Shown in pieces: positions 1 to 46,339 of a stretch of 64,000 nucleotides of DNA. Source of the DNA: Paragordius varius (lineage: Eukaryota > Animalia > Nematomorpha); NCBI GenBank assembly GCA_964247055.1, contig OZ176057.1:5208001-5272000 (forward strand). Reading direction: 5' to 3'. The notes under the pieces are model-generated. The model saw nothing but the letters and a program-made list of their open reading frames with translations, made no database searches and was not told the origin of the DNA. The translations under genes and the position numbers were made by a program. Position 1 is the first letter of the stretch. The number at the start of each line of letters is the position of its first letter.

Positions 1-1366
1 AAATTTGCTGCCAATTAATATAAATTCTATTTTAGCTGTAATATGGATTAGCAACAAATTTGATGTGATTAATCCTAACCGGTCCAACCTTTTTGTATGG
101 TATGAAAAATTTCGATAAAAATGTATTTAACAAAATTGAAATATAAATTAGGTATCCTAATGTATAAATAATATATATGTATCATTTTGTGCAAAAAAAT
201 GTTAACATTATTTTTCATGAGATATTCTGACCAGCTTATTAAAATTTTTTATTTGTTTACGACCTAGTGAAAATCGAAATCGGGCAAAAAGTGAAAAATA
301 AGAATATTAAGGAGGATTCAAAAAATTATAATAAAGTTGAGATATTATGGTTTACTATCATTTAAGCAGATATCAATATATAAATAGTCTAAAATTATTA
401 ATTTATAAAATCTCAGTTAAAAAGATGGCGTTTTTCTTTTTACACACTTAAAAGGCAATTTTTAATCTCTATTAAAATAATTTTTTTAAATTATAAACCA
501 GCTAACTATTATTAAAATCTTAAGATTCATATTTAAAAAATAACTTCTATAACAAAATAAACTGAAAATTATTTTTTTTTATCTTAAATTAATGTCATTT
601 GGTTTGTGATTGTATAAAAATCTACTGTCTTAGTTTAAAGTTTCTCAATTTTAAAGTATATAAAATAATACAAAATGAAATTTACAAGTAGTGAAAAAAA
701 CACCAAAAATCCCTACATATCCCAGTAAAAATATTAATTTGTATTAAAACAAACTTGTTACTTTTGATATTCCAATACTTTTAAATTCGCATAAATATTC
801 TTGATAATTCCCACTCATATAAGATTCCCAATAAAACAGTATATTTTTCTCTAATCATAAACCAGATGACAAAAAAATTAAAAACTAAATGCAAATATTT
901 TTCAGTTTTTTTTGTTATAGAAGGTTTTTACTTAATTAAATGTTTTAATAGTGAAGTTAGTAAATATTTAAAAAATATTTTAATAAAGTTTCATAAATTT
1001 TTTTGACTTTTAAGTGTGTTAGAAACCTTTGAACTAAGAAATATTGAAACCCTATGATTTTAGGCTATTTATATATAAAAATTATCTCCTAAAATGATAT
1101 AAAACCATAATTTCTCAACTTTTATCAATATTTTTTGAATTATCCTTGATTATCCTTTGTAATTTTGCCGAATTTTTCGATTTTCTCTTAATATTTCAAA
1201 AACTAGGTCTACAAAATTAAAATTTTTGCGGAAAATCAATTCACTGGTCATAAGCTATCTCATGAAAAAACAATTTTTGTTAAAAAAATTAATCCTCTTT
1301 TTTGCACACAGTGTTATGTATCTTTATTTAATAAAAATAAAAAAATTTAAAAATATTTTCTGATAC

Positions 1367-1417
1367 TTGATGATGATTGCGATTGAGCGGCTTCAGGTTG
1401 TGAAGTTGCTAATGTTT
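1367..1417 (-). CDS. 51-bp Ser/Gln/Ala-rich linker exon (ETLATSQPEAAQSQSSS)
   Basis: attatag|AA ACA TTA ... TCA TCA A|gtatca; phase 1-1; identical copy at 9916-9966. Confidence 0.6.
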
Positions 1418-4400
1418 CTATAATTAATATGAATTAAAATTTTATGACATTGGTGAACACATATCACTGTACGACATTTTTGGAATTATTTGGCATTTTT
1501 GAGAAATTATTCAAATTATTATTTATTTATTCGAACAAGCGAATATCATATTAATTATTTTAGCGAGAAAGCCATACTATATTAAAATATATACTATAAT
1601 GTTCTTTACAGAAATATTGCTTGGTTTAATCTCACGGATTAAACAAAATAATTAGATATTCCGTTTAAATGCCGATGTCCGAATTTCAATTCGATACATT
1701 AAGGGGAATAAAATTTGAATTTTATTTGGTTAAAGACACATTTTCTGCACACATTTACCCTAAAAATCTCTGCAGCCGTCTATATAATAGTCAAAATTCA
1801 AATCAAATTTTATAATTTCTAATCTAGAAAATATGATAAAATAAGTGATGAATTTCAATATGATGTTTATAAATAATTATTAAGAGATGAATTATGTTTT
1901 AGGAGGCAGCTATTTTACAGAGAGCACGAAACACCAAAATATTTATAAATTTACATAGGCTAGAACTTATCAAAATATTAATGATATTACATATTATTTG
2001 GCCGTTATGATTTATAATATACTTATAATAAATCCCTATAAAAACATTTACTAAATGATTTTATCAAAATTCATTATATATGCATTATTAAATCAATATA
2101 GGCTAATTTACACCGTTTTAAATGATTTTCTTGTGTTTTAAATGATGGAAGTTTGATCCACAATTTATAATGTTATCGCCAACATGCTGATAATCAGTTG
2201 TATGGTTTGCATTAATTTTGTTCGTTAATAGATAGGTTATTAGATTTTAAACAAAAACTGTGAAAAAATTACAAGATAATAAAAAAACTATGTCCTTCAC
2301 CAATTTTTCGTAGTTCGTTTCATTTCCGATTATTAAAAACTTTTAAAAGTAATTTAAGCAATATTAAATTTAAAGCGATTTATTTTTTATAGTAGCAGGA
2401 TTTTTGCGAGTTAAACTTTCTATTTAAATGGCGATTTCCCAAATTCCCCATGGGCCCCAAAAATGATTTTCGGTCCGCGGGCCGCATAGGAAATACCCCT
2501 GATTACCATATATATATATATATATATATTCTAATTAATAAATTACCTGGTTTTGGTGTTGATGGTGAGGGAGATGGTGATGTAGACTTGGTTAAATCTA
2601 AAAAATTAATACATGATAATGTGTGCTATTAAAGCAATAATTGTTTATAATTTACTATATACTATTATACCTAATAATTACAATAATTTCAATTATTTGG
2701 ATGAGGAGCGGAATTATGTTTGAGAAGCAGACTTTTTTTAAAAGTTGCTGAATTTTTAAAGGAAAAATTGCAATCTCTATTTAATATTTTAATTAACGAG
2801 ATTTAAGTCATAAGTTATGGCAGGACGAGTTTTTGTTAAAAATTTTGGGGTATTAACACTGTTTATCGGCATAATGTATATAAAAAAATTTGTAGAAAAT
2901 TTTAAAATACCATATCATACGATCAATCATTTATACCATATTATTATATATATTTTATGTTAACACGTAGGCTCTTAATTTTTTGCCCCTTAAATCACGT
3001 GGTCTTGATATATTTTGCAGAATATTGTTTACTTTTAAAAATGCAAATTTTTACAGTTTTATTGACATATATATATTATAATAACATGTAATTGCTAATA
3101 GCTATATAAAATAAATGTTATACCTGATAATGACAATATTTTAGTCTCTTGTTTTTCTTTAATATCAACTAGTTTTACTGCATGGATAGGAGGAGTTATG
3201 GGAAATCTGAAATGATTTTCGGCCGCGTTAAATGTCACGTTTGATTTTACAAAACCGGATTGCGAGTTGGATTGTGTGTATAATTCGTAATTTGGATCTT
3301 TGTAAGCGTTAAAAATTTTGATATATATAAATTCGTCTTGTTTAATAGCAGTTGCATTCATTATTCCTTTGACTAAATGAAAAATAAATTTATATATAAA
3401 TTGTTAATAATGTTGCTTTTATATCCGGACCAAAATCGGCAATCGCTAAACATGATATTGTGAAATCTATTATAAGCAAAGCCAACAAACAACTAATTCC
3501 ATATATTAAGCTAATTTAAACCGTTATAAATGATTTTCTTGTGTTTTAAATGATGGAAGTTTGATCCACAATTTATAATGTTATCGCCAACATGCTGATA
3601 ATCAGTTGTATGGTTTGCATTAATTTTGTTCGTTAATAGATAGGTTATTAGATTTCAAACAAAAACTGTGAAAAAATTACAAGTCAATAAAAAAACTATG
3701 TCCTTCACCAATTTTTCGTAGTTCGTTTCATTTCCGATTATTAAAAACTTTTAAAAGTAATTTAAGCAATATTAATTTTAAAGCGATTTATTTTTTATAG
3801 TAGCAGGATTTTTGCGAGTTAAACTTTCTATTTAAATGGCGATTTCCCAAATTCCCCATGGGCCCCAAAAATGATTTTCGGTCCGCGGGCCGCATAGGAA
3901 ATACCCCTGATTACCATATATATATATATATATATTCTAATTAATAAATTACCTGGTTTTGGTGTTGATGGTGAGGGAGATGGTGATGTAGACTTGGTTA
4001 AATCTAAAAAATTAATACATGATAATGTGTGCTATTAAAGCAATAATTGTTTATAATTTACTATATACTATTATACCTAATAATTACAATAATTTCAATT
4101 ATTTGGATGAGGAGCGGAATTATGTTTGAGAAGCAGACTTTTTTTAAAAGTTGCTGAATTTTTAAAGGAAAAATTGCAATCTCTATTTAATATTTTAATT
4201 AACGAGATTTAAGTCATAAGTTATGGCAGGACGAGTTTTTGTTAAAAATTTTGGGGTATTAGGACTGTTTATCGGCATAATGTATATAAAAAAATTTGTA
4301 GAAAATTTTAAAATACCATATCATACGATCAATCATTTATACCATATTATTATATATATTTTATGTTAACACGTAGGCTCTTAATTTTTTGCCCCTTAAA

Positions 4401-7400
4401 TCACGTGGTCTTGATATATTTTGCAGAATATTGTTTACTTTTAAAAATGCAAATTTTTACAGTTTTATTGACATATATATATTATAATAACATGTAATTA
4501 CTAATAGCTATATAAAATAAATGTTATACCTGATATGGACAATATTTTAGTCTCTTGTTTTTTTTTAATATCAACTATTTTTACTGCATGGATAGGAGTT
4601 ATGGGATGTCTGAAATATTTTGCAGTCGCGTTGAATGTCGCGTTTGATTTTTCAAAACCGGATTGCGAGTTGGATTGTGTGTATAATTCGTAATTTGGAT
4701 CTTTGTAAGCGTTTAAAATTTTGATATGTATAAATTTGCCTTGTTTAATAGCAGTTGCATTCATTATTCCTTTGACTAAATGAAAAAAAATTTTATAAAT
4801 AAATTGTTAATAATGTTGCTTTTATATCCGGACCAAAATCGGCAATCGCTAAACATGATATTGTGAAATCTATTATAAGCAAAGCCAACAAACAACTAAT
4901 TCCATATATTAAGCTAATTTGACCGAACTCGTTGTAGGTTCAATGCTTAAAACCAGGGCTTCTTAAACTATGGGTCGCGACCCCATTTGGGGTTGCATAA
5001 AATAATTATGGGGTCGCGGGTAATGAAAATACAATATTACAAAAAATGTTTTTAACTTGTAAAATTTTTGTTATAAAGAAAAGTAACAATCATCCTAGTT
5101 AATTACATCAGAATTGATGGTGAGAATCCACTTTTGTTTTAGAAACTACATTTCTATAAATTTTGTGCAATTCTGTTTTAGATTTTTATATGTTTCAAAA
5201 CGAATTCCAAATTTTTATATCATGTATATTGTTACTAATAAATATATCATCAAAAATATTAATTTTCCTTTTATATTTGTTGTGGTCGTTAAAAAACTCG
5301 TAATCATAAATGGGGTCGGGAATTACACAAGTTTAAGAAGCCCTGCTTTTTGACTAACATTATTGTTGAAGGTATAGGCAAATATTGGGTGAAAATTGAT
5401 TAATTTTGTGCAATTATAAGAGATAATATACCTATGTAATTTACCAAATGCCTCCATTTTATGGCTATATAATATATTTAATATTTTTTCTACCACAAAA
5501 TGTAGCATAAAGTATAGCACATATGCAGTACATATCCGAAAAATGTATATTTTCATGATAGGTTTGGAGCTATGAGATTTTTACAGCATGATTAAATATA
5601 GATTGCTATAAAGTTATTAATTATTGCCAAATAGCATATGCAAAGAGAATTATTATTGACAAATAATATTTATATGTGAAAATAATACCTAAAAGCCAAT
5701 AATTCTGCCTTTGTTATTTTGGTAATAATAATAACTTCTAGCAATATATCATACTCATATTCTAATAAAAATATTTACACTACATAACTAATTAGTACTT
5801 AGGATTAATTGCAAAATTTGCGCATTATGCTAGATAATTTATTGCTTCATTCATTTTATTTATGAAAAACAAATAAAAAATTTTATTTTTCGCGTGTAGG
5901 CTCCAAATATCGCAGATTTTTGATCACGTCTAAAATGCCATTTTTTTGATAAACGCCAACTGATATAATGCGATAAAATACAATATGCCAGAATTTAAAA
6001 AAATACATATTTGCTTTAATAAATTTTGGCAAATTATTTTATAGCGTACTTATTAAGTAAGCATGGTGAAAGTATATTCCCCTGAAAGATTTTAAAAGCC
6101 ATTTAATTTTAAGAAAGTGATAATATATAATAAAAAAGGTGTTTTATAAAGCTTTAAACCGATTTCAACTAGTAAACGATTGCCAATAAAATTAAACGAA
6201 ATTTTATTTTTTCAATTTTTTTTATTAGAAAATATAATATCACGCAGTCTTTTTTAATTTTAAAACCACTAGTAGATTTTAGCTGGGGGTTTACGACTAA
6301 AATAAATTTAATAAAAATAATGTTTTCCAGGCAATCTTCTACCAAAATTTATTTAATGTAAGTGCTTTAATCGACTTACAGCTATAAACCAAAAAGTCTA
6401 AATATTTTTTAATTTTTTTACACCAAAAGCACCATTAAAATCCTGACACCTAACAGAGGTATAATTTAATATATATATATATTTATATTATACCTAAATT
6501 AAGGTGTGTTATAGACCAATCCAAAAAGTTTATATTAATTGACAGAAACGCTAAATTGGTGTATATTTATCTCCAAGTAAAGAATTATAATCATGTCAGT
6601 GCCTATTTATTATACCTGCAAACTTATAGATCTCTTGAATACCATTCCTCTTGCAATCTAACTTGAACCCCAATTTATTGTAATTGGTTCTATTATGCAC
6701 ATATGTAATGTCAGATTTGTACGTTTGTATAGTTTTGTTTCCCAGGGACAATGTACATTGGGTTTCTTCCTCAATTTTGCCTTTAATTATCACAACATCA
6801 TCATTGGTAATATTCAACTTGGGCACAACGGCTAAATTTTCAAAAATAAAATGGGAATAAAAATTTGTAAATATATATAGTGTTTGGGCCTTTAAAAAAT
6901 ATTTGCGAAACGTGTTGAAGTTCAAAAGTTTAAATGAACTGATAAAATTTTAACACCAAAATGGCAAAATTTCTTTCTTATATTATTCCAGTTTTCAACG
7001 GCTCACAGGTCTAAATTTTAGGAAAGCGCTTTTTAAAATTATCACATGGGGAGGCTTCATTCTGTGTATAATGTGGCCATAATAATATGTGTGGCTTTGA
7101 AGCTTTAAAAGAACCATATTGATGCATTAAAGCTTTTAGATAATTGAAACACAGAGGAAAATCTTATTCCAGCGCTTTTTTTAATATAACTAGAGGGCCT
7201 ACCCCATAAAATGGGCGTACGAGGAAATAACAATGGGAAAACCACTTTTTGAGATTATTATTCACCAAATTTTAGGTATTCCCCGTATACAGTCAAAGAT
7301 TTTAATCTAATTTTTTTAAATATGTCCCTTGGCAGAGCTTCTTTCCTTTTATAAGTTACTATGCAAAAAATACAGAAGTAAAACATTCACTTGCTCCAAT

Positions 7401-10400
7401 CAGGTGAGGGGTAAGGCTATTCCCTTTAAAATACGCCACTATATAAAATCAAATGAGTGCGCGAATCCATATATTACAAAAGCACGATATTAAAAAAATT
7501 CCTTCTGAATAAAGTTTAGACGATGGGTTTAAAATATTCTTATTAACACATAAAATTCAAAGCCAAAAAATTCCGTTTAGTAGATATATGAAAGAAAATA
7601 TAATAATATATTTGTGATCAAAAAATAATATTATTTTATTAAAATTTTAATATTCAAATGATACTAGAATTTCATAAAATAAATATTTTCAAATCATTTT
7701 TATAATTTTGTTAAAGTAGTAAAAAATAGGTCCTCAAATACTCGAGTTTTAATTTAGAATACGACATATTTTATTAATTTAAGCCTTTAGTTATATAAGT
7801 TTTACATCCTAATAATATTTCAGACAAAAATATTTATCAGATATTATTTAGTAAATAGAATTCGGGTACTTAATAATTTTATAAAAATAGTTGTAATGCC
7901 GGGAATCAAATTTTTATGTTCTTTGTGTAATCGCACGATCTTATGTTTTGATAAATTTATTTATAAAGATAATATATTTAGCGTTCAAAAGTTTCACATT
8001 TATAAAATCAGTAGGATGTTAATAAATTAAGAGCAAAACAAGAATACCAATTAATTTCATGAAATTTAAATTTTTTTTCCGATCAAATAATAACATCCTG
8101 AAATGGGTAAAATATTAAAATGACCTGTATTTACACATAAGCTAAAATTTATATTAACCTTTTTGAAGATTTGTTTGTCCCTAACTGTGATAAAGTATTT
8201 AACTCCTATCTTTAAGTTATTAAATTTACAAAATCTGTAATGTTTTTCACACATTTTTAAATTTGAATGAATAATATCGATGATACTAAAAAATACATGT
8301 GTATTATATCGACAGTTTTGACAAAAGTCTGGGCCACCCTTAATTTTAGATGCACACAACGTCTCTTCTGCGTACTTTTTGCCGACATCTTATCTTAGTT
8401 ATGCCCGTTACACAAAGAACCTTATCGGAAAAAATAATAATGCTTATTGATTCAATCTTACCACATAGGAAATATTTGTTTATCATGTAAAAAATAACCT
8501 TATTTCATATGCTACAGTTTTAATTGGCTAACCATATTTTATCAAATTAAATTTGCTGCCAATTAATATAAATTCTATTTTAGCTGTAATATGGATTAGC
8601 AACAAATTTGATGTGATTAATCCCAACCGGTCCAACCTTTTTGTATGGTATGAAAAATTTCGATAAAAATGTATTTAACAAAATTGAAATATAAATTAGG
8701 TATCCTAATGTATAAATAATATATATGTATCATTTTGTGCAAAAAAATGTTAACATTATTTTTCATGAGATATTCTGACCAGCTTATTAAAATTTTTTAT
8801 TTGTTTACGACCTAGTGAAAATCGAAATCGGGCAAAAAGTGAAAAATAAGAATTTTAAGGAGGATTCAAAAAATTATAATAAAGTTGAGATATTATGGTT
8901 TACTATCATTTAAGCAGATATCAATATATAAATAGTCTAAAATTATTAATTTATAAAATCTCAGTTTAAAAGATGGCGTTTTTCTTTTTACACACTTAAA
9001 AGGCAAATTTTTAATCTCTATTAAAATAATTTTTTTAAATTATAAACCAGCTAACTATTATTAAAATCTTAAGATTCATATTTAAAAAATAACTTCTATA
9101 ACAAAATAAACTGAAAATTATTTTTTTTTATCTTAAATTTATGTCATTTGGTTTGTGATTGTATAAAAATCTACTGTCTTAGTTTAAAGTTTCTCAATTT
9201 TAAAGTATATAAAATAATACAAAATGAAATTTACAAGTAGTGAAAAAAACACCAAAAATCCCTACATATCCCAGTAAAAATATTAATTTGTATTAAAACA
9301 AACTTGTTACTTTTGATATTCCAATACTTTTAAATTCGCATAAATATTCTTGATAATTCCCTCTCATATAAGATTCCCAATAAAACAGTATATTTTTCTC
9401 TAATCATAAACCAGATGACAAAAAAATTAAAAACTAAATGCAAATATTTTTCAGTTTTTTTTGTTATAGAAGGTTTTTACTTAATTAAATGTTTTAATAG
9501 TGAAGTTAGTAAATATTTAAAAAATATTTTAATAAAGTTTCATAAATTTTTTTGACTTTTAAGTGTGTTAGAAACCTTTGAACTAAGAAATATTGAAACC
9601 CTATGATTTTAGGCTATTTATATATAAAAATTATCTCCTAAAATGATATAAAACCATAATTTCTCAACTTTTATCAATATTTTTTGAATTATCCTTGATT
9701 ATCCTTTGTAATTTTGCCGAATTTTTCGATTTTCTCTTAATATTTCAAAAACTAGGTCTACAAAATTAAAATTTTTGCGGAAAATCAATTCACTGGTCAT
9801 AAGCTATCTCATGAAAAAACAATTTTTGTTAAAAAAATTAATCCTCTTTTTTGCACACAGTGTTATGTATCTTTATTTAATAAAAATAAAAAAATTTAAA
9901 AATATTTTCTGATACTTGATGATGATTGCGATTGAGCGGCTTCAGGTTGTGAAGTTGCTAATGTTTCTATAATTAATATGAATTAAAATTTTATGACATT
10001 GGTGAACACATATCACTGTACGACATTTTTGGAATTATTTGGCATTTTTGAGAAATTATTCAAATTATTATTTATTTATTCGAACAAGCGAATATCATAT
10101 TAATTATTTTAGCGAGAAAGCCATACTATATTAAAATATATACTATAATGTTCTTTACAGAAATATTGCTTGGTTTAATCTCACGGATTAAACAAAATAA
10201 TTAGATATTCCGTTTAAATGCCGATGTCCGAATTTCAATTCGATACATTAAGGGGAATAAAATTTGAATTTTATTTGGTTAAAGACACATTTTCTGCACA
10301 CATTTACCCTAAAAATCTCTGCAGCCGTCTATATAATAGTCAAAATTCAAATCAAATTTTATAATTTCTAATCTAGAAAATATGATAAAATAAGTGATGA

Positions 10401-13400
10401 ATTTCAATATGATGTTTATAAATAATTATTAAGAGATGAATTATGTTTTAGGAGGCAGCTATTTTACAGAGAGCACGAAACACCAAAATATTTATAAATT
10501 TACATAGGCTAGAACTTATCAAAATATTAATGATATTACATATTATTTGGCCGTTATGATTTATAATATACTTATAATAAATCCCTATAAAAACATTTAC
10601 TAAATGATTTTATCAAAATTCATTATATATGCATTATTAAATCAATATAGGCTAATTTACACCGTTTTAAATGATTTTCTTGTGTTTTAAATGATGGAAG
10701 TTTGATCCACAATTTATAATGTTATCGCCAACATGCTGATAATCAGTTGTATGGTTTGCATTAATTTTGTTCGTTAATAGATAGGTTATTAGATTTTAAA
10801 CAAAAACTGTGAAAAAATTACAAGTCAATAAAAAAACTATGTCCTTCACCAATTTTTCGTAGTTCGTTTCATTTCCGATTATTAAAAACTTTTAAAAGTA
10901 ATTTAAGCAATATTAATTTTAAAGCGATTTATTTTTTGTAGTAGCAGGATTTTTGCGAGTTAAACTTTCTATTTAAATGGCGATTTCCCAAATTCCCCAT
11001 GGGCCCCAAAAATGATTTTCGGTCCGCGGGCCGCATAGGAAATACCCCTGATTACCATATATATATATATATATATTCTAATTAATAAATTACCTGGTTT
11101 TGGTGTTGATGGTGAGGGAGATGGTGATGTAGACTTGGTTAAATCTAAAAAATTAATACATGATAATGTGTGCTATTAAAGCAATAATTGTTTATAATTT
11201 ACTATATACTATTATACCTAATAATTACAATAATTTCAATTATTTGGATGAGGAGCGGAATTATGTTTGAGAAGCAGACTTTTTTTAAAAGTTGCTGAAT
11301 TTTTAAAGGAAAAATTGCAATCTCTATTTAATATTTTAATTAACGAGATTTAAGTCATAAGTTATGGCAGGACGAGTTTTTGTTAAAAATTTTGGGGTAT
11401 TAGGACTGTTTATCGGCATAATGTATATAAAAAAATTTGTAGAAAATTTTAAAATACCATATCATACGATCAATCATTTATACCATATTATTATATATAT
11501 TTTATGTTAACACGTAGGCTCTTAATTTTTTGCCCCTTAAATCACGTGGTCTTGATATATTTTGCAGAATATTGTTTACTTTTAAAAATGCAAATTTTTA
11601 CAGTTTTATTGACATATATATATTATAATAACATGTAATTACTAATAGCTATATAAAATAAATGTTATACCTGATATGGACAATATTTTAGTCTCTTGTT
11701 TTTTTTTAATATCAACTATTTTTACTGCATGGATAGGAGTTATGGGATGTCTGAAATATTTTGCAGTCGCGTTGAATGTCGCGTTTGATTTTTCAAAACC
11801 GGATTGCGAGTTGGATTGTGTGTATAATTCGTAATTTGGATCTTTGTAAGCGTTTAAAATTTTGATATGTATAAATTTGCCTTGTTTAATAGCAGTTGCA
11901 TTCATTATTCCTTTGACTAAATGAAAAAAAATTTTATAAATAAATTGTTAATTGCTTTTATATCCGGACCAAAATCGGCAATCGCTAAACATGATATTGT
12001 GAAATCTATTATAAGCAAAGCCAACAAACAACTAATTCCATATATTAAGCTAATTTGACCGAACTCGTTGTAGGTTCAATGCTTAAAACCAGGGCTTCTT
12101 AAACTATGGGTCGCGACCCCATTTGGGGTTGCATAAAATAATTATGGGGTCGCGGGTAATGAAAATACAATATTACAAAAAATGTTTTTAACTTGTAAAA
12201 TTTTTGTTATAAAGAAAAGTAACAATCATCCTAGTTAATTACATCAGAATTGATGGTGAGAATCCACTTTTGTTTTAGAAACTACATTTCTATAAATTTT
12301 GTGCAATTCTGTTTTAGATTTTTATATGTTTCAAAACGAATTCCAAATTTTTATATCATGTATATTGTTACTAATAAATATATCATCAAAAATATTAATT
12401 TTCCTTTTATATTTGTTGTGGTCGTTAAAAAACTCGTAATCATAAATGGGATCGGGAATTACACAAGTTTAAGAAGCCCTGCTTTTTGACTAACATTATT
12501 GTTGAAGGTATAGGCAAATATTGGGTGAAAATTGATTAATTTTGTGCAATTATAAGAGATAATATACCTATGTAATTTACCAAATGCCTCCATTTTATGG
12601 CTATATAATATATTTAATATTTTTTCTACCACAAAATGTAGCATAAAGTATTGCACATATGCAGTACATATCCGAAAAATGATATTTTCATGATAGGTTT
12701 GGAGCTATGAGATTTTTACAGCATGATTAAATATAGATTGCTATAAAGTTATTAATTATTGCCAAATAGCATATGCAAAGAGAATTATTATTGACAAATA
12801 ATATTTATATGTGAAAATAATACCTAAAAGCCAATAATTCTGCCTTTGTTATTTTGGTAATAATAATAACTTCTAGCAATATATACATACTCATATTCTA
12901 ATAAAAATATTTACACTACATAACTAATTAGTACTTAGGATTAATTGCAAAATTTGCGCATTATGCTAAATAATTTATTGCTTCATTCATTTTGTTTATG
13001 AAAAACAAATAAATATTTTTATTTTTCGCGTGTAGGCTTCAAATATCGCAGATTTTTCACGTCTAAAATGCCATTTTTTTGATAAACGCCAACTGATATA
13101 ATGCGATAAAATACAATATGCTAGAAATTAAAAAAATACATATTTGCTTTAATAAATTTTGGCAAATTATTTTAAAGCGTACTTATTAAGTAAGCATGGT
13201 GAAATTATATACCCCTGAAAGATTTTAAAAGCCCATTTAATTTTAAGAAAGTGATAATATATAATAAAAAAGGTGTTTTATAAAGCTTAAAACCGATTTC
13301 AACTAGAAAACGATTGCCAATAAAATTAAACGAAATTTTATTTTTTCAATTTTTTTATTAGAAAATATCATATCACGCAGTCTTGTTTAATTTTAAAACA

Positions 13401-15062
13401 CTAGTAGATTTTAGCTAGGGGTTTACGACTAAAATAAATTTAATAAAAATAATGTTTTCCAGGCAATCTTCTACCAAAATTTATTTAATGTAAGTGCTTT
13501 AATCGACTTACAGCTATCCAAAAAGTCTAAATATTTTTAAATTTTTTTACACCAAAAGCACCATTAAAATCCTGACACCTAACAGAGGAATAATTTAATA
13601 TATATATATATATTTATATTATACCTAAATTAAGGTGTGTTATAGACCAATCCAAAAAGTTTATATTAATTGACAGAAACGCTAAATTGGTGTATATTTA
13701 CCTCCAAGTAAAGAATTATAATCATGCCAGTGCCTATTTATTATACCTGCAAACTTAGAGCTGTTTTGAGTACCATTCCTCATGCAATCTAACTTGAACC
13801 CCAATTTATTGTAATTGGTTCTATTATGCACATATGTAATGTCAGATTTGTACGTTTGTATAGTTTTGTTTCCCAGGGACAATGTACATTGGGTTTCTTC
13901 CTCAATTTTGGCTTTAATTATCACAACATCATCATTGGTAATTATCAAATTGGGCAAAACAACGGCTAAATTTTAAAAATAAAAATGGGAATAAAAATGT
14001 GTAAAAATATATAGTGTTTTGGCCTTTAAAAAATATTTGCGAAACGTGTTGAAGTTCAAAAGTTTAAATGAACTGATAAAATTTTAAATTCACCAAAATG
14101 GCAAAATTTCTTTCTTATATGATTTCAGTTTTTAACGGCTCACAGGTATAAATTTTAGGAAAGCGCTTTTTAAAATTTTCATATGGGGAGGCTTCATTCT
14201 GTGTATAATGTGGCCATAATAATATGTGTGGCTTTGAAGCTTTAAAGGAACCATATTGATGCATTAAAGCTTTTAGATATTTGAAACACAGAGGAAAATT
14301 TTATTCCAGCGCTTTTTTTAATATAACTAGAGGGCCTACCCCATAAAATGGGCGTACGAGGAAATAACAATGGGAAAACCACTTTTTGAGATTATTATTC
14401 ACCAAATTTTAGGTATTCCCCGTATACAGTCAAAGATTTTAATCTAATTTTTTTTAAATATGTCCCTTGGCAGAGCTTCTTTCCTTTTATAAGTTACTAT
14501 GCAAAAAATACAGAAGTAAAACATTCACTTGCTCCAATCAGGTGAGGGGTAAGGCTATTCCCTTTAAAATACGCCACTATATAAAATCAAATGAGGCCAA
14601 AGCCTACGAGAACATTTAATTAAATTTTGTTTTTTCCATTTTCGGTACAATAAAAGATTTAAGCGCTTTTTTCAATTAGTGTTTTTGGGTAAAGCCCTCT
14701 CTTTTATTAATTCGCCATCCTATGATACAATGTGAAATTGAAGCAATTTTTTGCCTAAATATAGCGACCATTCAATATGGTTTTTTTCTTGCGTATTAGC
14801 CGACTCCAGAAATTTTTACTCTTTGTTAACACATGACTTCGCGAGGCAAACTTTTTGGTTATATAGATATCTAAATTTTTAGTGCTTCCCCTATAACTCG
14901 ATTATTAAGCAAATACTTTGTTTTAGGAGAAAAATATTTTGTTAACATATTGATAATTAATAATTTCTCCATCATTATATATTTGAAAATAAAGTGTTAT
15001 TTTACCCTTGAATCATTTCATAATTAATATTTAAGAAAGTTTGTACCTAGGGCTTCATGATC

Positions 15063-15103
<41 letters not shown>

Positions 15104-15507
15104 AATTAGTTTTTCCAATTTTTTTTATTTAAATTCCTCTTATATGTAAATGCCTTCAAACAAAACCAGTTATAGTTTAAAGAACATTTTATTAAATCGT
15201 TATGGGATATTAAGATAGACTGCCACGCGCGATAAAGGCACATCTGTATATTATTATAATCATATTATCTTACGAGGATATATGGGATAACTTTCATATC
15301 GTTTTTGTTCTTTCGTACACGCAATATGGATTTTTCTAATTTTATCATTAAAAGAAAAGGTAATGGTTTTATCTGTAATGGTGTTCTCTATTTTGTCTAT
15401 TTTTGTTGTAAATAATAGACATTGCTTCGGATTGAATGCTTGTTCAGGAATTTCGAATGTGACATTGTTTTTAGACCAGGCTAAATTCTCTACCTTTATC
15501 ATCATGG
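1367..15507 (-). CDS. Multi-exon modular extracellular/cell-surface protein gene (tandem FN3/Ig-like domain exons plus S/T/P linker exons); partial, continues past the left window edge, 5' exon not identified
   Basis: Eleven open exons bounded by AG/GT, all phase 1-1 with lengths divisible by 3, which splice into one frame: 15274-15507, 13747-13965, 11671-11916, 11094-11144, 9916-9966, 8125-8388, 6616-6831, 4530-4775, 3953-4003, 3124-3372, 2547-2597, plus a twelfth at 1367-1417. The domain fold is inferred from size, beta-rich pattern and one FN3-like motif. Confidence 0.7.
2445..2501 (-). mobile_element. hAT-like element terminus (copies near 3855-3909 and 10996-11051)
   Basis: CAGGGGTATTTCCTATGCGGCCCGCGGACCG is typical of Charlie-type subterminal sequence; the other end was not found. 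Confidence 0.4.
2547..2597 (-). CDS. 51-bp Ser/Pro/Thr linker exon (DLTKSTSPSPSPSTPKP)
   Basis: Strong acceptor ttttttag|AT TTA and donor CCA G|gtaatt; phase 1-1. Confidence 0.75.
3124..3372 (-). CDS. 83-codon beta-rich domain exon, module D2 variant A
   Basis: catttag|TC AAA GGA ATA ATG ... TCA G|gtataa; open frame (ORF 3095-3361); 249 bp, phase 1-1. Confidence 0.75.
3953..4003 (-). CDS. 51-bp Ser/Pro/Thr linker exon (second copy)
   Basis: Identical to 2547-2597, same splice sites. Confidence 0.75.
4530..4775 (-). CDS. 82-codon beta-rich domain exon, module D2 variant B
   Basis: Same splice sites as 3124-3372; 246 bp; differs by 14 aa substitutions and one in-frame codon deletion. Confidence 0.75.
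4954..5345. mobile_element. Non-autonomous hAT (Charlie-like) MITE; second copy 12090-12481
   Basis: Perfect 16-bp TIR CAGGGCTTCTTAAACT / AGTTTAAGAAGCCCTG; TSD not preserved. Confidence 0.75.
6616..6831 (-). CDS. 72-codon two-cysteine domain exon, module D1
   Basis: aatttag|CC GTT GTG CCC ... GCA G|gtataa; 216 bp, phase 1-1; ...EETQCTLSLG...FKLDCKR... Confidence 0.75.
8125..8388 (-). CDS. 88-codon Cys-rich FN3-like domain exon
   Basis: Open frame containing FNNLKIGVKYFITV, which resembles the FN3 L-x-x-L-x-P-G-x-x-Y-x-V motif. ag|AT GTC ... ACA G|gtcatt gives 264 bp, phase 1-1. The acceptor is weak; an alternative internal acceptor ttttttag lies near 8287. Confidence 0.5.
9916..9966 (-). 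CDS. 51-bp linker exon (ETLATSQPEAAQSQSSS), second copy
   Basis: Identical to 1367-1417. Confidence 0.6.
11094..11144 (-). CDS. 51-bp Ser/Pro/Thr linker exon (third copy)
   Basis: Identical to 2547-2597. Confidence 0.75.
11671..11916 (-). CDS. 82-codon domain exon, module D2 variant B (identical to 4530-4775)
   Basis: ORF 11642-11905 translation identical to 4501-4764; same splice sites. Confidence 0.75.
13747..13965 (-). CDS. 73-codon two-cysteine domain exon, module D1 variant
   Basis: Paralog of 6616-6831 with the same splice sites, one extra codon and clustered amino-acid changes. Confidence 0.75.
15062..15100. repeat. (TA)n microsatellite
   Basis: About 18 uninterrupted TA units. Confidence 0.9.
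15274..15507 (-). CDS. 78-codon two-cysteine domain exon, module D0
   Basis: ataactttag|CC ATG ATG ATA AAG ... CCT C|gtaaga; 234 bp, phase 1-1; size and two-Cys spacing resemble D1 (KQCLL...HIAC vs TQCTL...KLDC). Confidence 0.7.
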
Positions 15508-15616
15508 CTAAAGTTATAAATTTTAAATAATAGTTGGTTAAAATATATATATACATATATGCATAATTTATACATATATATACTTATATATTTAATATAT
15601 TCATATATTTGAATCA

Positions 15617-15761
15617 CAATATGAGTAAGTATGCATTGCTACTAAGTTATTAATTATTGCCAAATAGCATATGCAGCAAAGAAAATTATAATTGGCTTTT
15701 AATTTGCTATTTGGCAAGTAATTATCAATGAAAAATTAGCAGTCTATACTTACTCATACTG
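15617..15761. mobile_element. Fold-back MITE (CAGTATGAGTAAGTA family)
   Basis: Inverted arms ...atgagtaagtat...ttgccaaatagc / gctatttggcaa...atacttactcatactg|ta. Confidence 0.55.
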
Positions 15762-16228
15762 TAGATTTGGATTTTAAAATCTCAAGTTAAAGAGATTAAA
15801 TTTTTTAGTTCTGATACGACTCAGATTAGTGAGTCATATATATAATATCCTAATATCCTGGAGAAAAATAAAAGATAATTGTCATTAAAAAAGAAACATT
15901 TGAAACAAAGAATAGAAATCAATTTTTTTTATCAAATTTATCATTTTGGTTTCAAAAGACTATTGAACCGTAGCTAAAAGTAAATGCGAATCCTTTAGCC
16001 CAAAAAATAATATATTATTTTCACTATATAAATAGTCCTTTACTTTAATTATATATTTTTTTCGTCATCTATTTATAAATTTCTCTATAATATAGTTCAT
16101 TACCTTTTAATTTTTATGTAATGATTATGTTTTGGGATTGTTTTACTTAAACTTGTAACGAATCTATGTTTTGAAAGTTTTTTGGTTAAAAAATATTTAT
16201 AAAACATTGTTCTAATGTGTGAGATATA

Positions 16229-16421: not shown

Positions 16422-17239
16422 TAAAAGCGTATGCAAGAAGTCATTTTTTTAACAGACAATTCTTTTATGCGAAAGCTCATAAACAGCGAATTCATTTGCC
16501 ATAATTTTTTAAAAGTTGAAAAAAAATGAAAATCGGAAATTAAGTAAAAGTGAAAATCAAGGATTAAAGATAAAACTTGAAACATTGAAATTTATCACCA
16601 AGGGTATTAAATGAAACTCGGATAATAAAACGTTTGTCTAACATACTAATACACATTAAAATTTTATGAAGCATTATTTAAATAATTTTTTAAACTATTT
16701 ATTAGTTAACACTATTACATTCATATTTAATACATTTAAAATAATTAATAAAACATATTTTTTAATTTTTCATTTTTGTCATAGTTTAAATTTTTTAGAC
16801 GAGACAACTAATTTTGACTATTTTTAAGTGTATTTTTATTTAAAATTTATTTCATTAAAGTATATAAATAGTAAATCTGAAAAAATTGGTACCTAAGAAT
16901 TTTTTTATTAGGGTTTAGAAAAATTTTCTGCATTTAACATTAGACCCGAATCAAAAGCAAAAGTTTCAGACATTTAGCTGTGTTTATATTTCGAAAAAGC
17001 ACAAAAGACTGATTGGAAAGGTAGTTAGTCATTTAAATCAACTTGATTAACAAAATGTTCGATAATAATTTTCTTCCTATGCTACTAAAAATGATATTTT
17101 TAAAAAAAAGCATTTTTTAGAGGATTATTTTAAATGTATATAAATGTAATTACTGGTTTCAGAGGAGACTTAATAAAATATTAGTATATAAATTATTAAT
17201 ATATGAAAGACGAAGGATCAAGTAAATTACCAATTTTTT

Positions 17240-20200
17240 TATAAGGGTTTAGAGAATTTTTTTTTAACTGAATTTAACATTATACTCGAATCAAAATTAA
17301 ATGTTTCATTTAGCTGTTATATTTCGAAAGAGCTCAAAAGACGGATTCGAAGGGTAGTTAGTCATTTAAATCAAGCCGATATAAAAATATATTTGATAAT
17401 AATTTCCTTATTCTACTAAAAATGATATTTTAAAAAAAAAGCATTTTTTAGAGGATTATTTTAAATGTATATAATAATTACCGGCTACAGAGGACGAGAC
17501 TTGATAAAAGTATATAAATTAATATATGAAAGACATTAAATAAGGATCAAGTAAATGGTTTAGCGTCAAATCATTTTTTGCCAATCCAAAATTATTTTGA
17601 CAAAATTTAAGCGTTTATGTTATCATCTTTATTTTTCGATTTTACTATGGTGATGTATAGAATAACCCATGTTTGGTATCCGATAAAATTATATATCAGC
17701 CTTTGCTGTTTATTTAGATTGTTTTTTTTTCTACAAAATTTGTGTTTTTTTCACATTTAAATTTCATAATAATATATTTTAATAATATATATTGGATCTT
17801 TTTAAGTAAATTGGAATCCCCTATATATGTATTCTTTTCTAAATTATATTAGTAGAGTCTCATTATTAAGAAATTTAATTTAATGAATTAATTTTTGATT
17901 AACAAATGAAAAATAGTGTTGGTCAATTTCAATATATATATATATATGGAATAATTTATATTATCCTTAAAACACAAGTTTATATGTAAATTTTTTTCTT
18001 ATATTATATATCAAATTATGAATTATATATAATAGAGTAAAATAAAAATTAAAGATAAATATTTTTTAAACACTATATTTTTGGGTTCAGGAAATATAGA
18101 TAATTTTTTAATAAAAATAAAATTATTAATTTTGGATATTGTTCACTCTTTATCGCAATTAAATTGGGGTATGTGAATACACCAGACAAAATTTAAGTTA
18201 GGATCTTTTAAAAATTTTTGAAGGAAACGGTCCCAATTCAAATTTATGCTACTATCCTAATAAAAATTATATAAATATCCTTAAATATCTAAATAAAATT
18301 TCTTTAAAGTTCCATGTCAAACTACCTCGACGCCATTTTATTCTACAATATATTCGCAAAATATCGTCTTCATTTAATTTTAAGTGTAAAATTATTTTTT
18401 ATTTAAATTACATCTAACATTGATAGAAATAGAAAAAGTGGTTTATTTTTATATTATTTTTTATTTTCATCATTTTATATATGCCACGTTGACTAAATTT
18501 TTACTTTTAGGTTTGAAATAAATAATATCAAGTATATAAATTTTTTTATATATTTCGGATTATTGATGTTATAGTGCAAAATTTTGCCATGGTTTTGATT
18601 CCTTTTATATTTTTTAGAGAATATAATCTTAAACAGGCCTGGAATATCCAACTACCCCAATTTGAATCGAAGGACTGAAACGAATGTGTTTATCCAAGTA
18701 AGGATGTAGGTATTTTTAGATTCGTAAATAATTTTTATTTTTTAGGTAGAAATCGAAAATTGTATCAACATACAACATCTTAAAAAAATAATTACTTATT
18801 ATTTAAAATATCCATTTTTTTAATATACCTGCAGTTGGAGGTGCTATATGTATATATATATATAACAAATACTTATTATGATATTAAGATTTAATATATA
18901 AAAGAATGTGATTTTTTAAATAAACTCTCTCTCTCCCTCTGAATACCTCCTTAATTTAACCAGGCGCCGATTTAGTTAGCAATAGTGTCTATTTGTAATA
19001 TTTCTTATATTATAAAATAATCCATTTTCACTCATACTAAAACTAAAGTAAAATCTCATTTCATTCTTGAATATAAAAAAGGATACATAGGTACACACTT
19101 AATGTTAGTCAATACAGCATTGGCCATTTAGCAATACAGTAGGTAGCGAATGGTATAAAAAAAATTCTTTCTCTAATTTTATGTTGTAAGATTTTAAAAA
19201 TTTTAAATTAGTCATTCGTTATATAGCATACGCTATTGTATTGTCAATTGGCCAAAAATAATGTTAATTGACTAACATTCTTGGCATACTATACATATAT
19301 AATAGCGTCATTCTTTGAATGGGTAATCTCTTTTAAATCATGTGATATATACTATAATAAATTACCAATAATATTTAAATGCAAAAGCACCAACCTCAAA
19401 TTTTTCACATAGTATAATTGTCTTAATAGTTTGATTGCAAAGATATCCTCTTAAATGTTGCGTTTTATTTATTCGTTTATCTTCATAGTTATGAATATGA
19501 TATCAACTCTTAGTCTATTGATATACAAAACTACCAATTTATTTCATTTTGATTGTTTTCATTATAATCTTAGGATAAAAACTAATATTTTTCATGCGTG
19601 ATTGGATGAAATTAGATGGCTTCTAATTAACCAACATTTATATTACTAAAAGTTTTACAATGTAATCCATTTGTAGATTCGGCCTTTAAAACCTCTTATT
19701 TCCTCAAAAATAACGATTGAGAAGCAGGACAAGGCTCGGTGATAACTAAAGCATCCAGAAATATAACTTTAAGGGTGGAATCGATTCCATTTATTATTCT
19801 CAAAGCTCAGATTTATTTTCTTATTTGTTGTTTATATAGCAAGTGGGTTAGGGTCCATTTTGTTTCATAGCTCTTACGGTAAAAAAATTTTAATTTTATA
19901 ATCCCGCTTAAATCTTTATTTCATAATCTTATATATTGAACATATAAATACGAATAAAAAACTCAATATCGCACTAGAGTTTGCTATCAGGACAATATGT
20001 AGTCTTTGAATTAGAATGCCAGTTTTAAAAAAATTTAATAATATAATCACAAAAATTTTTAATATTTTCAAAATCAAAATAATTTAGTAATTGTTACCAC
20101 CTCCGTTTGAATCTAAAAATATATAAATAAAAATTTTAGAAACAACATATATGGTACTTAAAAGCTCCAATAGAAATATAATATAGGCAGGTCATAAGAT

Positions 20201-23200
20201 TATCAATAAAATAATTTATATAGATTCCTTCTTTTATTTAAAAAACATCGACTAAAATTCGAACTTTATATTTCGGTGTACCATTATTTTTGTTTATATC
20301 TACCATATTTTTTTGTTTTTCTATAAGGGTTTAGAGAATTTTTTTTAACTGAATTTAACATTATACTCGAATCAAAATTAAATGTTTCATTTAGCTGTGT
20401 TTATATTTCGAAAGAGCACAAAAGACTGATTCGAAAGGTAGTTAGTCATTTAAATCAACTTTATATAACAAAATGTTCGATAATAATTTTCTTCCTATGC
20501 TACTAAAAATTATATTTTAAAAAAAAGCATTTTTTAGAGGATTATTTTAAATGTATATAATAATTACCGGCTACAGAGGACGAGACTTGATAAAAGTATA
20601 TAAATTATTAATATATGAAAGACATTAAATAAGGATCAAGTAAATGGTTTAGCGTCAAATTATTTTTTGCCAATCCAAAATTATTTTGACAAAATTTAAG
20701 CGTTTATGTTATCATCTTTATTTTTCGATTTTACTATGGTGATGTATAGAATAACCCATGTTTGGTATCCGATAAAATTATATATCAGCCTTTGCTGTTT
20801 ATTTAGATTGTTTTTTTTTCTACAAAATTTGTGTTTTTTTCACAGTTAAATTTCATAATAATATATTTTAATAATATATATTGGATCTTTTTAAGTAAAT
20901 TGGAATCCCCTATGTATGTATTCTTTTCTAAATTATATTAGTAGAGTCTCATTATTAAGAAATTTAATTTAATGAATTAATTTTTTAATAACAAATGAAA
21001 AATAGTGTTGGTCAATTTCAATATATATATATATATATATATATATATGGAATAATTTATATTATCCTTAAAAAACCAATTTTATATGTAAATTTTTTTC
21101 TAATATTATATATCAATTTAATTATGAATTATATATAATAGACAAATTGAAGAAAACATAAATATTAAAAATAAATATTTTTTCCAAAACACTATATTTT
21201 TGGGTTCCAAAGAAGGCAATAGATAACACTAAATGAGTATTATGTAATAAAAATAAAATTATTAATTTTGGAGTGATATTGTTCACTCTTTATCGCAATT
21301 CAAATTGGGGTATTTAGATACACCAGACAAAATTTAAGTTAGGATTTTTTAAAATTTTTTGAAGGAAACGGTCCCAATTCAAATTATGCTTCTATCCTAA
21401 TAAAAATTATATAAATATGCTTAAATATCTAAAAAAAATTTCTTTAAAGTTCCACCATGTCCAACTGCCTCGACGCCATTTTATTCTACAATATATTCGC
21501 AAAATATCGTCTTCATTTAATTTTAAGTGTAAAATTATTTTTTATTTAAATTACATCTAACATTGATAGAAATAGAAAAAGTGGTTTATTTTATATTATT
21601 TTTTATTTTCACCATTGCACATATGCCACGTTGACTAAATTTTTACTTTTAGGTTTTATCTTGAAATAAATAATATCAAGTAAATAAATTTTTTTATATA
21701 TTTCGATTGATGTTATAATGCAAAATTTTGCCATGGTTTTGATTCCTTCCATATTTTTTAAAGAATTTAATCTTAAACAGGCCTGGAATATCCAACTACC
21801 CCAATTTGAATCGAAGGACTGAAATGAATGTGTTTATCCAAGTAAGGATGTAGGTTTTTTTAGATTTATTACTCGTAAATAATTTTTATTTTTTAGAAAT
21901 TGAAAATTGTATCAACATACAACATCTTAAAAAAATAATTATTTATTATTTAAATTATCCATTTTTAATATACCTGCAGATGTAGATTCTATTTTTTTTA
22001 AATAACAAATACTTATTATGATATAACTAAGATTTAATCTATAAAAGAATGTGATTTTTTAAATAAACTCTCTCTCTCCCTCTGAATACCTCCTTAATTT
22101 AACCAAGCGCCGATTTTAGCAATAGTGTCTATTTGTAAAGATATTTGTTATATTTTAAACTCCCAATCCATTTTGACTCATACTAAAACTAAAGTAAAAG
22201 CTCATTTCATTCTTTAATAAAAAAAGGATACATAGGTGCACACTTAATGTTAGTCAATACAGCATTGGCCATTTAGCAATACAGTAGGTAGCGAATGGTA
22301 TAAAAGAAATTCTCTCTCTGAAAATTATGTTGTAAGATTTTAAAAACCATTCGTTATATAGCATACGCTATTGTATTGTCAATTGGCCAAAAATAGTGGT
22401 AATTGACTAACATTCTGGGCATACTATACATATATAATAGCCTCATTCTTTGAATGGGTAATCTCTTTTAAATCATGTGATATATACTAAGATAATTAAT
22501 TACCAATAATTTTAAAATGCAAAAGCCCCAAGCTCCTCAATTTTTTTCATATAGTATAATTGTCTCAATAGTTTGTTTGCAAAGATATCCTCTTAAATGT
22601 TGCGTTTTATTTATTCGTTTATCTTCATAGTTATGAATATGATATCAATTGTTAGTCAATTGATATACAAAACTATTACCATTTTATTTCATTCTGTTTG
22701 TTTTCATTATAATCTTATGATAAAAACTAATATTTTTCATGCGTGATTGGATTTAGAAATTTGATGGCTTCTAATTAACCAACTATAGTACTAAAAGTTT
22801 TAAAATGTAATCTATTTGTAGATTCGGAACCTATTATTTCCTCAAAAATAACGATTGAGAAGCAGGACAAGGCTCGGTGATAACTAAAGCATCCAGAAAT
22901 AAACTTTAAGGGTGGAATCGATTCCATTTATTATTCTCAAAGCTCAGATTTATTTTCTTATTTGTTGTTTATATAGCAGGTGGGTTAGGGTCCATTTTGT
23001 TTCATAGCTCTTACGGTAAAAAAAATTTAATTTTATAATCTCGCTTAAATCTCTATTTCATAATCTTATATATTGAACATATAAATACGAATAAAAAACT
23101 CAATATCGCACTAGAGTTTGCTATCAGGACAATATGTAGTCTTTGAATTAGAATGCCAGTTTTAAAAAAATTTAATAATATAATCACAAAAATTTTTAAT

Positions 23201-23461
23201 ATTTTCAAAATCAAAATAATTTAGTAATTGTTACCACCTCCGCTTGAATCTAAAAATATATAAATAAAAATTTTAGGGTATTTAAACAACATATATGGTA
23301 ATTAAAAGCTCCAATAGAAATATAATATAGGCAGGTCATAAGATTATCAATAAAATAATTTATATAGATTCCTTTTTTTATTTAAAAAAACATCGACTAA
23401 AATTCTAACTTTATATTTCGGTGTACCATTATTTTTGTTTATATCTACCATGTTTTTTTTG
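17240..23461. repeat. Older ~3.1-kb tandem duplication (17240-20321 vs 20322-23461) with a ~330-bp partial third copy at ~16905-17235
   Basis: tataagggtttagagaatt at 17240 and 20322; colinear throughout with many small indels. Confidence 0.92.
18161..18663. mobile_element. ~500-bp MITE with imperfect ~25-bp TIRs; copies at 21302-21807 and 44801-52514 (interrupted by the LTR element)
   Basis: aaattggggtatgtgaatacaccag pairs with ctggaatatccaactaccccaattt; three dispersed homologous copies. Confidence 0.6.
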
Positions 23462-25329: not shown

Positions 25330-27022
25330 AATATTCAACTTTTTGCTAGACTTCGTGGACAAATTAGGCTGATCTGTCTGAGGATAAATTGATCAGATTG
25401 GAGATTGTAAGGTGGGTGTCGTTATTTATTTTGACCATCTTCTGGGTCTGCCTTTACGTTTACCCTCAAACAGGCCCAGTATGATTGTTTTCTCCAATTG
25501 TTATTACGGATGACGTGGCCAAAGTAGCCTAATCTCCGTTTGTTATCATTTGAAGTAGTGTAATCTTAGCGTTTATTGCGGATCCATTCATTAGTGAGTT
25601 TGTCCGTCAATTTTTTATCAAGTAGCATTCTCCAACAGGTTTGCTTAAAAGCTTGTATAATTTTTTGGTCGGAGTTTTTGCATACCCCACTTTCACAGCC
25701 ATTGGTTGCGATTGGGAATATTAATGTAAATTTTTTTTTTCGCTATTTTATTTATTTTTCGTGAAGGCCATATCTTGCCATATTCCTTTAATTTTAGCCC
25801 TGGCTATGGCTAGTCTTCGTTTAATTTCAGGGTGTTGTATTTTATTATTAATTTCTACCCCTAAATATATGTTGTCGAGTGTTTGTTACTTTTATACAGT
25901 GTTCGTCCATTTCGATTGAGCATGTGGCATGATTTGATATGACTTTGGTTTCTGCCGAGTCAATTTCGAGGCCATGAGATTGGCTCTAAAGATATAGTTT
26001 TTCCACGAGGCGTTGTAAATCGTAATGTAAGTCAGCAAGTAGGAGGGTATCGTCCGCGTATTTAAGGTTATTATTTCTCCGCCTAATTTTACACCGATAT
26101 GATTCTCAGTATCTAACTTGGACCAGATATGTTCGGTGTAGATATTGAATAATAGTGGTAAAAGGATGCCCTGACGGGCGCCCCGATAGGAAACCAATCA
26201 GAGGTACCGTGGAATGTTTGAATACATTCCTCAGTGTTGCTGTATAAAGATCTTATTATTTGAATGAGACCAGGTGTTGTGCCATAGTGTGCTGTGAATA
26301 ATCTTGTCAAAGGCTTTTGATTAATCAATAAAACATAGATAAAATGGTTTGTTGTGTTCAATATATATATTAAGGCAGATAAGGTCCTGCAGCCTCTTCC
26401 CCTCCGAAAACCAGCTTGATTTTGTGAGATGTTATTCTCAACTTGGGATAATAATCCATAATACAATATTTATAATAATATTTTGAGGCGTGCGATATAA
26501 GCGCTATTGTTTGGTAGTTGTTGCATATTTTAGGAATGCCTTTTTTATGTATCGGTATAAGTAGAGATTTAGACCAATTGTTTGGCCAGATGCCGGATTG
26601 AAAATTTTTTTTATAAACGATTGTAAGTGTTTTAATTTAGTATTTCTATAGGGATGTCGTCTTATCCCAAAGCTTTGTTGTGAGGAAGGTATTTGATTGC
26701 ATTGTGGACCGCACTTTTTAGGATGGGTGGTTCATCTATGGGGATGTTATGGGGAGAATGTGTGACGTTTGAGTCACTGTAAGTCTTTAAAATATTGTTT
26801 CCATCTGTTAATTATATTTTTTAGTAATTTCTATCCCATTGGAATCAAGTATAGGGCCTTTCTATATATATGTTTTTGTTGCAATAATTTGTTTGACTGA
26901 GGTGAAAATATTATACCCTTTTTATTTTTATAAAATAGTTTATAGTTACCCAACGTTTTAGTGCAGATTCCACGGTACCTAATCTCCTGAATGCACAAGA
27001 AATTTAATTTTCTCACCTTCAT
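25330..27022 (-). mobile_element. Degenerate RTE-clade non-LTR retrotransposon (APE endonuclease and RT fragments)
   Basis: LNFLCIQEIRYRG (APE), NQAGFRRGRG, GARQG..LLPLLFNIYTE (RT), EGKRKGRPRRW (RTE C-terminus); many stops and frameshifts, internally deleted. Confidence 0.8.
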
Positions 27023-27267
27023 ACTTTCAGCTAATACATATAGCTTAGTTTTTAGGGAACCAACATTTATACTACTCTACAACATTTTTTATCTCTGTTT
27101 GCCCCTACACCCATGAAGCTACTTTTCACTTAAAACTCATAAAAAATGACAATACAAATAAATAAATGATAATACCGTAAATACAGTAAAATAATGATTA
27201 ATAAAGAACAGTAAAATTTATTACTTAAAAATTAAATAATAAACAAACTAAAAAATATATAAATATA

Positions 27268-40682: not shown

Positions 40683-41067
40683 TTAATTCAAATCGGTGTA
40701 TCTAACCCAGACCACATTTTTGCTATAGTTAAAAATCTACTGAAAGAGACGGTTCCTATATAAATTTATGGTTTTATCCTAATAAAAATTAAATAAATAA
40801 CCAAAATAATTAAATAAAATATATTAGGAAAATCGAGAGAATTACGCATTATATATTGTATAATTTATTTTAAATTGAGCTATAATGCGTATATAATAAA
40901 AATCAAATTTTTAATTTTCGACTTTTATTAAAAAGTCTTTATCGCAAAAAAATAAAATGAATTATATTGAAATGCATTATATAGTATGATATAGGTAAAT
41001 GATGGATAAAACAGTAAAATCAAGATTGTATACTAGAAAAAACCATTACCTTTAAAATATTATACGA

Positions 41068-46115: not shown

Positions 46116-46339
46116 TCATAATTCATCAAAAATCATTACATATTATCTTTTTTTTTCTCTGATTCTTGGTGCCTTATTATTTTAATTTACTAGCATAGCC
46201 ATAATTTCCTTATATTTTTCTTTTATGATGGCTATACAAAGTGAAATATTAATATTTATAATTTATCCAAATTGACAACATTTATAAAGATTACTTTTTA
46301 ATTTTATTTATTATCCTAGATATTAATTCATTTTTTTTT

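Follow-up and report, generated by a model that had tools for sequence, protein, structure and literature searches.

An exon-centred peak of divergence among tandem domain duplicates in a predicted modular gene of Paragordius varius

In the class I and class II genes of the major histocompatibility complex (MHC), divergence of the peptide-binding exons greatly exceeds that of the homogenised introns, a pattern usually explained by selection on the exons combined with recombination in the introns. A "peak of divergence" has also been described for duplicates under gene conversion (PMC3924837), and in the L/M opsins of gibbons exons are more diverged than introns, with conversion tracts located in the introns (PMC3213168). 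In this work we describe a tandemly duplicated locus with the same reversal in a 64,000-nucleotide stretch of the genome of the nematomorph Paragordius varius (assembly GCA_964247055.1, contig OZ176057.1, positions 5,208,001 to 5,272,000), referred to throughout as the window. The locus carries a predicted minus-strand gene assembled from short domain exons termed D0, D1 and D2, of which D2 is present in three copies, A, B and C. Copy A departs from the other two mainly within and immediately beside the exon, and the explanation that we favour, with moderate confidence, is that gene conversion or unequal exchange has homogenised the duplicates and left a peak of divergence centred on the exon, a pattern that is already known.

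The three modules containing D2 were compared through a three-way MAFFT alignment and a list of variable sites, with codon changes counted by the Nei-Gojobori method. Exon A (3124-3372, minus strand; 249 bp, phase 1 at both ends, 82 full codons) differs from exon B (4530-4775, minus; 246 bp) by 18 substitutions, 15 nonsynonymous and 3 synonymous, and by one in-frame 3-bp indel that gives A an extra proline, with no stops or frameshifts; these are the counts given by the initial annotation of this DNA. Exon C (11671-11916, minus) lies in a second 7.1-kb unit and is 100% identical to B, so that every exon difference sets A apart from the other two. Beyond the exon, 9 substitutions in ~1149 bp (0.78%) separate A from B/C. 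Six of these fall in the downstream intron and linker exon (~1 kb), where about 7 had been claimed, together with an indel in a TA microsatellite; the other three are found no more than 23 bp from the acceptor. B and C differ outside the exon at 2 sites and by a 5-bp indel only, and the 51-bp linker exon is invariant across the modules, its copy in module A (2547-2597, minus) being identical to those at 3953-4003 and 11094-11144 (both minus), which agrees with the earlier statement that A and B share it unchanged. The resulting contrast between exon and non-exon divergence is 9 to 10-fold (Fisher p=1.6e-8), so that the roughly 10-fold reversal of the normal exon and intron pattern holds in a formal alignment. 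Adjacent double substitutions at 2276-2277 and 2856-2857 make up two of the four A-specific intron events (p=2.5e-4 under random placement).

The changes specific to A are concentrated in an island of 266 bp (3130-3395) that contains 21 substitutions and the 3-bp indel, a divergence of 7.9%. This island holds 21 of the 27 A-specific differences, a degree of clustering that was equalled by none of 200,000 random placements, and the longest run of identity between A and B/C extends over 487 bp (p ~2.6e-4). Its edges do not coincide with those of the exon, since it starts 6 bp inside one exon end and passes the other by 23 bp into the upstream intron. The change is therefore centred on the exon but is not strictly confined to it, as the exon-restricted conversion suggested by the initial annotation would have it. 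The A-specific substitutions divide into 13 transitions and 14 transversions; C/T changes are as frequent as G/A changes, and neither strand coordination nor GC bias is present, an ordinary spectrum that counts against a single burst of damage or hypermutation.

Silent and replacement sites in the exon are about equally diverged. Between A and B, pN is 0.078 and pS 0.061 (dN 0.082, dS 0.063), giving a dN/dS of 1.29 that is indistinguishable from 1, with no excess of replacement over silent change (Fisher p=1.0). At the silent sites of the island, 3 synonymous and 3 adjacent intron changes fall on ~72 sites, compared with 6 changes in the remaining 1126 bp of non-exon DNA, a rate ~16-fold higher (p=2.7e-5); synonymous sites taken alone also exceed the non-exon background (p=0.005-0.012). 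The claim that the synonymous rate lies above the intron rate, and that this favours a conversion component, is thus upheld. Because such an excess is unattainable by selection on amino acids alone, the 266-bp tract must have had a history different from that of its flanks, which in turn points to recombination or conversion. Diversifying selection on the D2 exon, the other explanation initially put forward, is possible, and a dN/dS not different from 1 does not demonstrate it. Replacement sites do diverge beyond the level of the oldest intron background (p=0.008). The 15 variable protein positions (14 replacements and the indel) are concentrated at residues 12-20 and 41-56, and 10 of them lie outside predicted strands, which is not a significant preference when judged by secondary-structure classes only (p=0.25). 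A and B differ in net charge (+2 and +8, respectively), and a third N-glycosylation sequon is present in B.

These features place the locus close to the primate L/M opsins and to the model of Teshima and Innan, in which tandem paralogs with near-identical introns carry an exon whose divergence is several times greater, silent exon sites rise above introns and identical, conversion-type tracts flank the peak (PMC3924837, PMC3213168). Unlike the opsins, which are two genes, the D2 duplicates are predicted to be adjacent domains inside one gene; the D2 comparison rests on one genome and on copies with no known functional difference, and its dN/dS is about 1 across the exon, with an excess that is not limited to a few key sites. 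Similarly, MHC class I and II genes share with D2 an exon divergence far above that of introns, whereas D2 has no homology to MHC or immune receptors, is limited to three copies in one genome and shows no replacement excess.

The wider locus is a mosaic of near-identical and diverged tracts. A 7.1-kb unit containing D1, D2 and two linkers is present twice in tandem: self-BLAST and the DNA of the left flank delimit unit I, which starts 1093 bp to the left of the window and ends at 7457 (8550 bp), and unit II, which occupies 7458-14595 (7138 bp). Unit I is the longer because a 1.4-kb module, consisting of a linker exon, an intron and a D2 exon, is doubled within it; module A (2096-3517) adjoins module B (3503-4920), the two matching at 97.5% by self-BLAST, and the three-way alignment places module C, the single counterpart in unit II, at 10645-12056. 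When unit I without module A was aligned to unit II, 66 substitutions in 7118 bp were found to be spread very unevenly, with divergence of 0-0.5% from about 100 to 5500 and of 2.5-4.25% in 5935-7139, around the D1 exon. Put differently, 22 substitutions fall in 5.8 kb and 44 in the 1.33 kb around D1 (5830-7163 versus 12970-14300; 3.3%). The D1 exon itself (unit I, 6616-6831, 216 bp with two cysteines; unit II, 13747-13965, 219 bp; both minus) shows 9.5 nonsynonymous and 1.5 synonymous differences and a 3-bp indel between units. These differences are confined to the two ends of the exon, and a core of 42 codons is unchanged despite the 3.3% divergence of the surrounding ~1.3 kb. Both divergence islands of the locus, that around D1 and that in copy A of D2, contain a domain exon. 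Long near-identical tracts interrupted by divergent islands are the usual signature of duplicates that exchange sequence.

In the scenario that we favour, tandem duplication would have built the locus by doubling the 7.1-kb unit, and within unit I the 1.4-kb module of D2 and linker would have been duplicated again at a short microhomology, setting A beside B. Continued exchange between the copies, by gene conversion or unequal exchange, would then have held most of the duplicated DNA at 0-0.5% divergence, and the islands, 1.3 kb at 3.3% around D1 and 266 bp at 7.9% in D2-A, would be tracts that either escaped homogenisation or were imported from a diverged copy. The position of the second island would reflect selection against exchanges that erase the protein difference between A and B, or favoured amino-acid change in A; that erasure of this difference was disfavoured is the most likely reason why the peak sits on the exon of copy A. 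The outcome would be a protein with two non-identical adjacent D2 domains. We favour this scenario because A alone deviates, because the exon stands apart from the rest of the module and its silent sites share in the excess at the significance levels given above, because the units are mosaic and both islands contain a domain exon, and because the pattern agrees with those published for converting duplicates and for gibbon opsins.

Several points weigh against this scenario. D0, D1 and D2, compared pairwise, have no detectable similarity to one another, and the locus therefore offers no internal outgroup by which changes could be polarised; either A or the ancestor of B/C may have changed, and the island may have been retained or imported. 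At 7.9%, the island is also more diverged than any background tract of the locus, the highest of which stands at 3.3% (p=0.0017), so that simple retention would require the split of A and B to precede the 7.1-kb duplication, with A later lost from unit II, or else an additional acceleration at the amino-acid level. In addition, we infer selection against homogenisation solely from the positions of just two islands, the exons are predicted from sequence alone, and the adjacent doublets among the A intron events (two of four, p=2.5e-4) are not directly predicted by old divergence combined with conversion.

A one-off import, in which a single conversion or templated repair copied ~270-300 bp from a diverged D2 into copy A, is an unlikely explanation. 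In its favour, the size of the island is that of a typical conversion tract, its edges miss those of the exon (6 bp inside one end, 23 bp beyond the other), replacement and silent sites are equally diverged, and one event suffices. The donor would be the allele of the other haplotype or a paralog since lost, and an allelic donor would imply that the exon is highly polymorphic in the population. However, no donor was found. Searches of the whole 110-Mb, 44-contig assembly with exon A, both as DNA and as six-frame protein (E<=10), returned only A, B and C, a local tblastn search at E<=50 across the window and about 18 kb upstream found no further D2 copies, and D1, searched against the assembly, returned only its own two copies; here as in all our homology searches, exons were used one at a time and were not joined. 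There is thus no donor pool in the assembly, and the suggestion of the initial annotation that such a pool had fed conversion of the exon is not borne out. An import would further call for a donor, allele or paralog, that has escaped observation and that differs by 8% in the exon while its flanks can still be aligned, and it leaves unaccounted for the fact that A diverges in its intron (0.5-0.8%) more than B does from C (0.17%).

A more doubtful alternative is that D2 is a hypervariable recognition module of a lineage-specific surface protein, which would hold either deeply diverged alleles maintained in the population by balancing selection, one of them captured by copy A, or identical adjacent beta-sandwich domains of a single chain that selection drives apart while gene conversion keeps the remainder of the module alike. 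In the second case the locus would show, in nature, how neighbouring domains come to diverge in the face of homogenisation. Neither D2 nor D1 has a match in Pfam at E<=10, FN3 and Ig families included, and no relatives of D2 were recovered by a word-index protein search with an 88-aa open reading frame (ORF) or by HMMER against 1.84 billion representative proteins; an exact 26-mer scan of metagenome contigs was empty, and ESM Atlas features, with scores of 0.87 or less, provide a lead and nothing firmer. From a two-sequence alignment, the D2 exon alone is predicted to fold as a beta-sandwich with six main strands (pLDDT 87, pTM 0.77), whose top structural matches include many sandwiches of the FN3 and macroglobulin (MG) types (Z 7-8.5, TM 0.5-0.7). 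We therefore regard D2 as an orphan domain with a predicted generic FN3/Ig-like beta-sandwich, a resemblance of fold only, and so common a fold says nothing on function. With no Pfam match, no relatives, no donor pool and a generic fold, an immune or antigenic role for the D2 locus, to which the initial annotation had pointed, finds no support.

It is improbable that the pattern is an artefact, arising because copy A is misassembled, through the tandem placement of a haplotype variant or through a chimeric consensus, or because the exons are chance reading frames in non-coding repeats. Such an account gains from the lack of any relatives of D2 in Pfam, in the word search and among the 1.84 billion proteins, from our own estimate that a chance open stretch of 100 codons arises about once per window even at 25% GC with frequent stops, and from the fact that copy A and the exons are known from the assembly alone. 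The window is very AT-rich (22-36% GC). However, at the junction of A and B the 1.4-kb internal tandem repeat is clean and shows microhomology, which is atypical of false duplications, and the exons, read from the sequence and its open stretches, form a chain on the minus strand with AG acceptor and GT donor ends and phase 1 throughout. In addition to D1 and D2, this chain includes a D0 exon upstream in the same predicted gene (15274-15507, minus; 234 bp, two cysteines), and each of the three D2 exons is followed by a 51-bp Ser/Thr/Pro linker exon, that of module A being phase 1 at both ends. A further 51-bp, Ser-rich linker exon lies downstream (1367-1417, minus; phase 1 at both ends, AG/GT) and is in frame with the exon that precedes it. 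Three unrelated frames of 72-83 codons, all on one strand and interleaved with in-frame linkers of 17 codons, are difficult to reconcile with chance. Furthermore, both exon indels are 3 bp long, compared with 2 and 5 bp for the intron indels of the D2 modules, and together with the unchanged core of D1 within ~1.3 kb at 3.3% this argues for genuine, constrained coding sequence; the predicted fold of the D2 exon on its own (pLDDT 87) likewise speaks against a chance frame.

The predicted gene product resembles a familiar kind of protein. Since modules A and B adjoin as an internal tandem repeat within unit I, copies A and B are predicted to be neighbouring domains of one "beads-on-a-string" protein and not separate genes, and the Ser/Thr/Pro linkers, N-glycosylation sequons and paired cysteines of D0 and D1 suggest that the gene encodes a modular, glycosylated protein of extracellular type. 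In having one ~80-residue beta-sandwich domain per symmetric phase-1 exon, it resembles the FN3/Ig proteins assembled by phase 1-1 exon shuffling, and its linkers, sequons and cysteines recall extracellular members of that class with mucin-like linkers. It differs from them in that the D2 sequence resembles neither FN3 and Ig nor any other family in Pfam, in that D0, D1 and D2 are dissimilar to one another, and in that no signal peptide or membrane anchor was located for the predicted gene.

Error-prone synthesis at the time of duplication, through microhomology-mediated template switching or break-induced replication with changes that peak in density a few hundred bases away from the junction, is a still less probable source of the island. 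The junction of A and B, at ~3503-3517, does lie on the shared short words GCTAATTT and ACCG. Module B and the left flank of C differ at three sites there (3509, 3519 and 3526), the latter two falling after the GCTAATTT word as two mismatches within 12 bp, and these two base differences may be the trace of a duplication of the template-switch type. The island starts ~110 bp from the junction, and adjacent double substitutions, which account for two of the four A intron events (p=2.5e-4), are associated with translesion polymerases. However, a density of one change per 13 bp, sustained across 266 bp, far exceeds what such processes are known to produce, the 13 transitions and 14 transversions form a mixed spectrum that is not strand-coordinated, the 122 bp nearest to the junction are unchanged, and the near-match of the island with the exon would have to be chance. 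Least probable of all is pure positive selection at the amino-acid level, without recombination, on a binding domain whose duplication would be very recent. In its favour, replacements account for 15 of the 18 exon changes, the predicted strands exclude 10 of the 15 variable positions, the charge shifts from +2 in A to +8 in B with its third sequon, and replacement divergence exceeds the oldest intron background (p=0.008). Against it, a dN/dS of 1.29 is not distinct from 1, the variable positions show no significant leaning towards loops (p=0.25), and the equally raised synonymous and adjacent intron sites (p=2.7e-5) cannot result from selection on amino acids.

The surroundings of the locus contain further repeats. 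The 1.1-kb spacer of the units recurs once more, in an older form (89% identity; L010:5094-5976), ~2-3 kb left of unit I, and no D1 or D2 exon is detectable beside this third copy, which suggests an earlier round of duplication whose modules were lost or replaced. Module B is adjoined by an element of ~400 bp (4949-5350) with 21-nt terminal inverted repeats that are 95% complementary; it looks like a miniature inverted-repeat transposable element (MITE), and its counterpart stands beside C (12085-12486). A GC-rich intron motif at 2440-2500 occurs in three copies, every one within the modules, which excludes a dispersed repeat, and an Rfam search of 1-16000 gave zero matches. Upstream of D0, a 3.1-kb tandem duplication (17234-23459, 92% identity) has no convincing exons, and a 13-kb array at 27364-40685 (36% GC) is composed of ~479-bp tandem repeats with a higher-order periodicity of ~3.4 kb, each repeat bearing an ORF of 81-86 aa. 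Retrotransposon remains at 25400-27100 and 45700-52100 carry ORFs broken by stops that resemble reverse transcriptase, endonuclease, integrase, protease and gag. A leucine-rich-repeat gene at 60099-62599 on the plus strand (LRR_8, E=5e-20; LRRCT weak and sub-threshold, E=0.06) is unrelated to the D2 locus.

Together these observations make the D2 locus a clean, small example, in an orphan gene, of how selection on coding DNA and the exchange of sequence among tandem copies may jointly reverse the normal pattern of exon and intron divergence. Such a reversal does not by itself indicate an immune-type generator of diversity. If several deeply diverged types of the D2 exon should prove to exist in the population, the gene would have to be considered a candidate for a role in recognition or adhesion.

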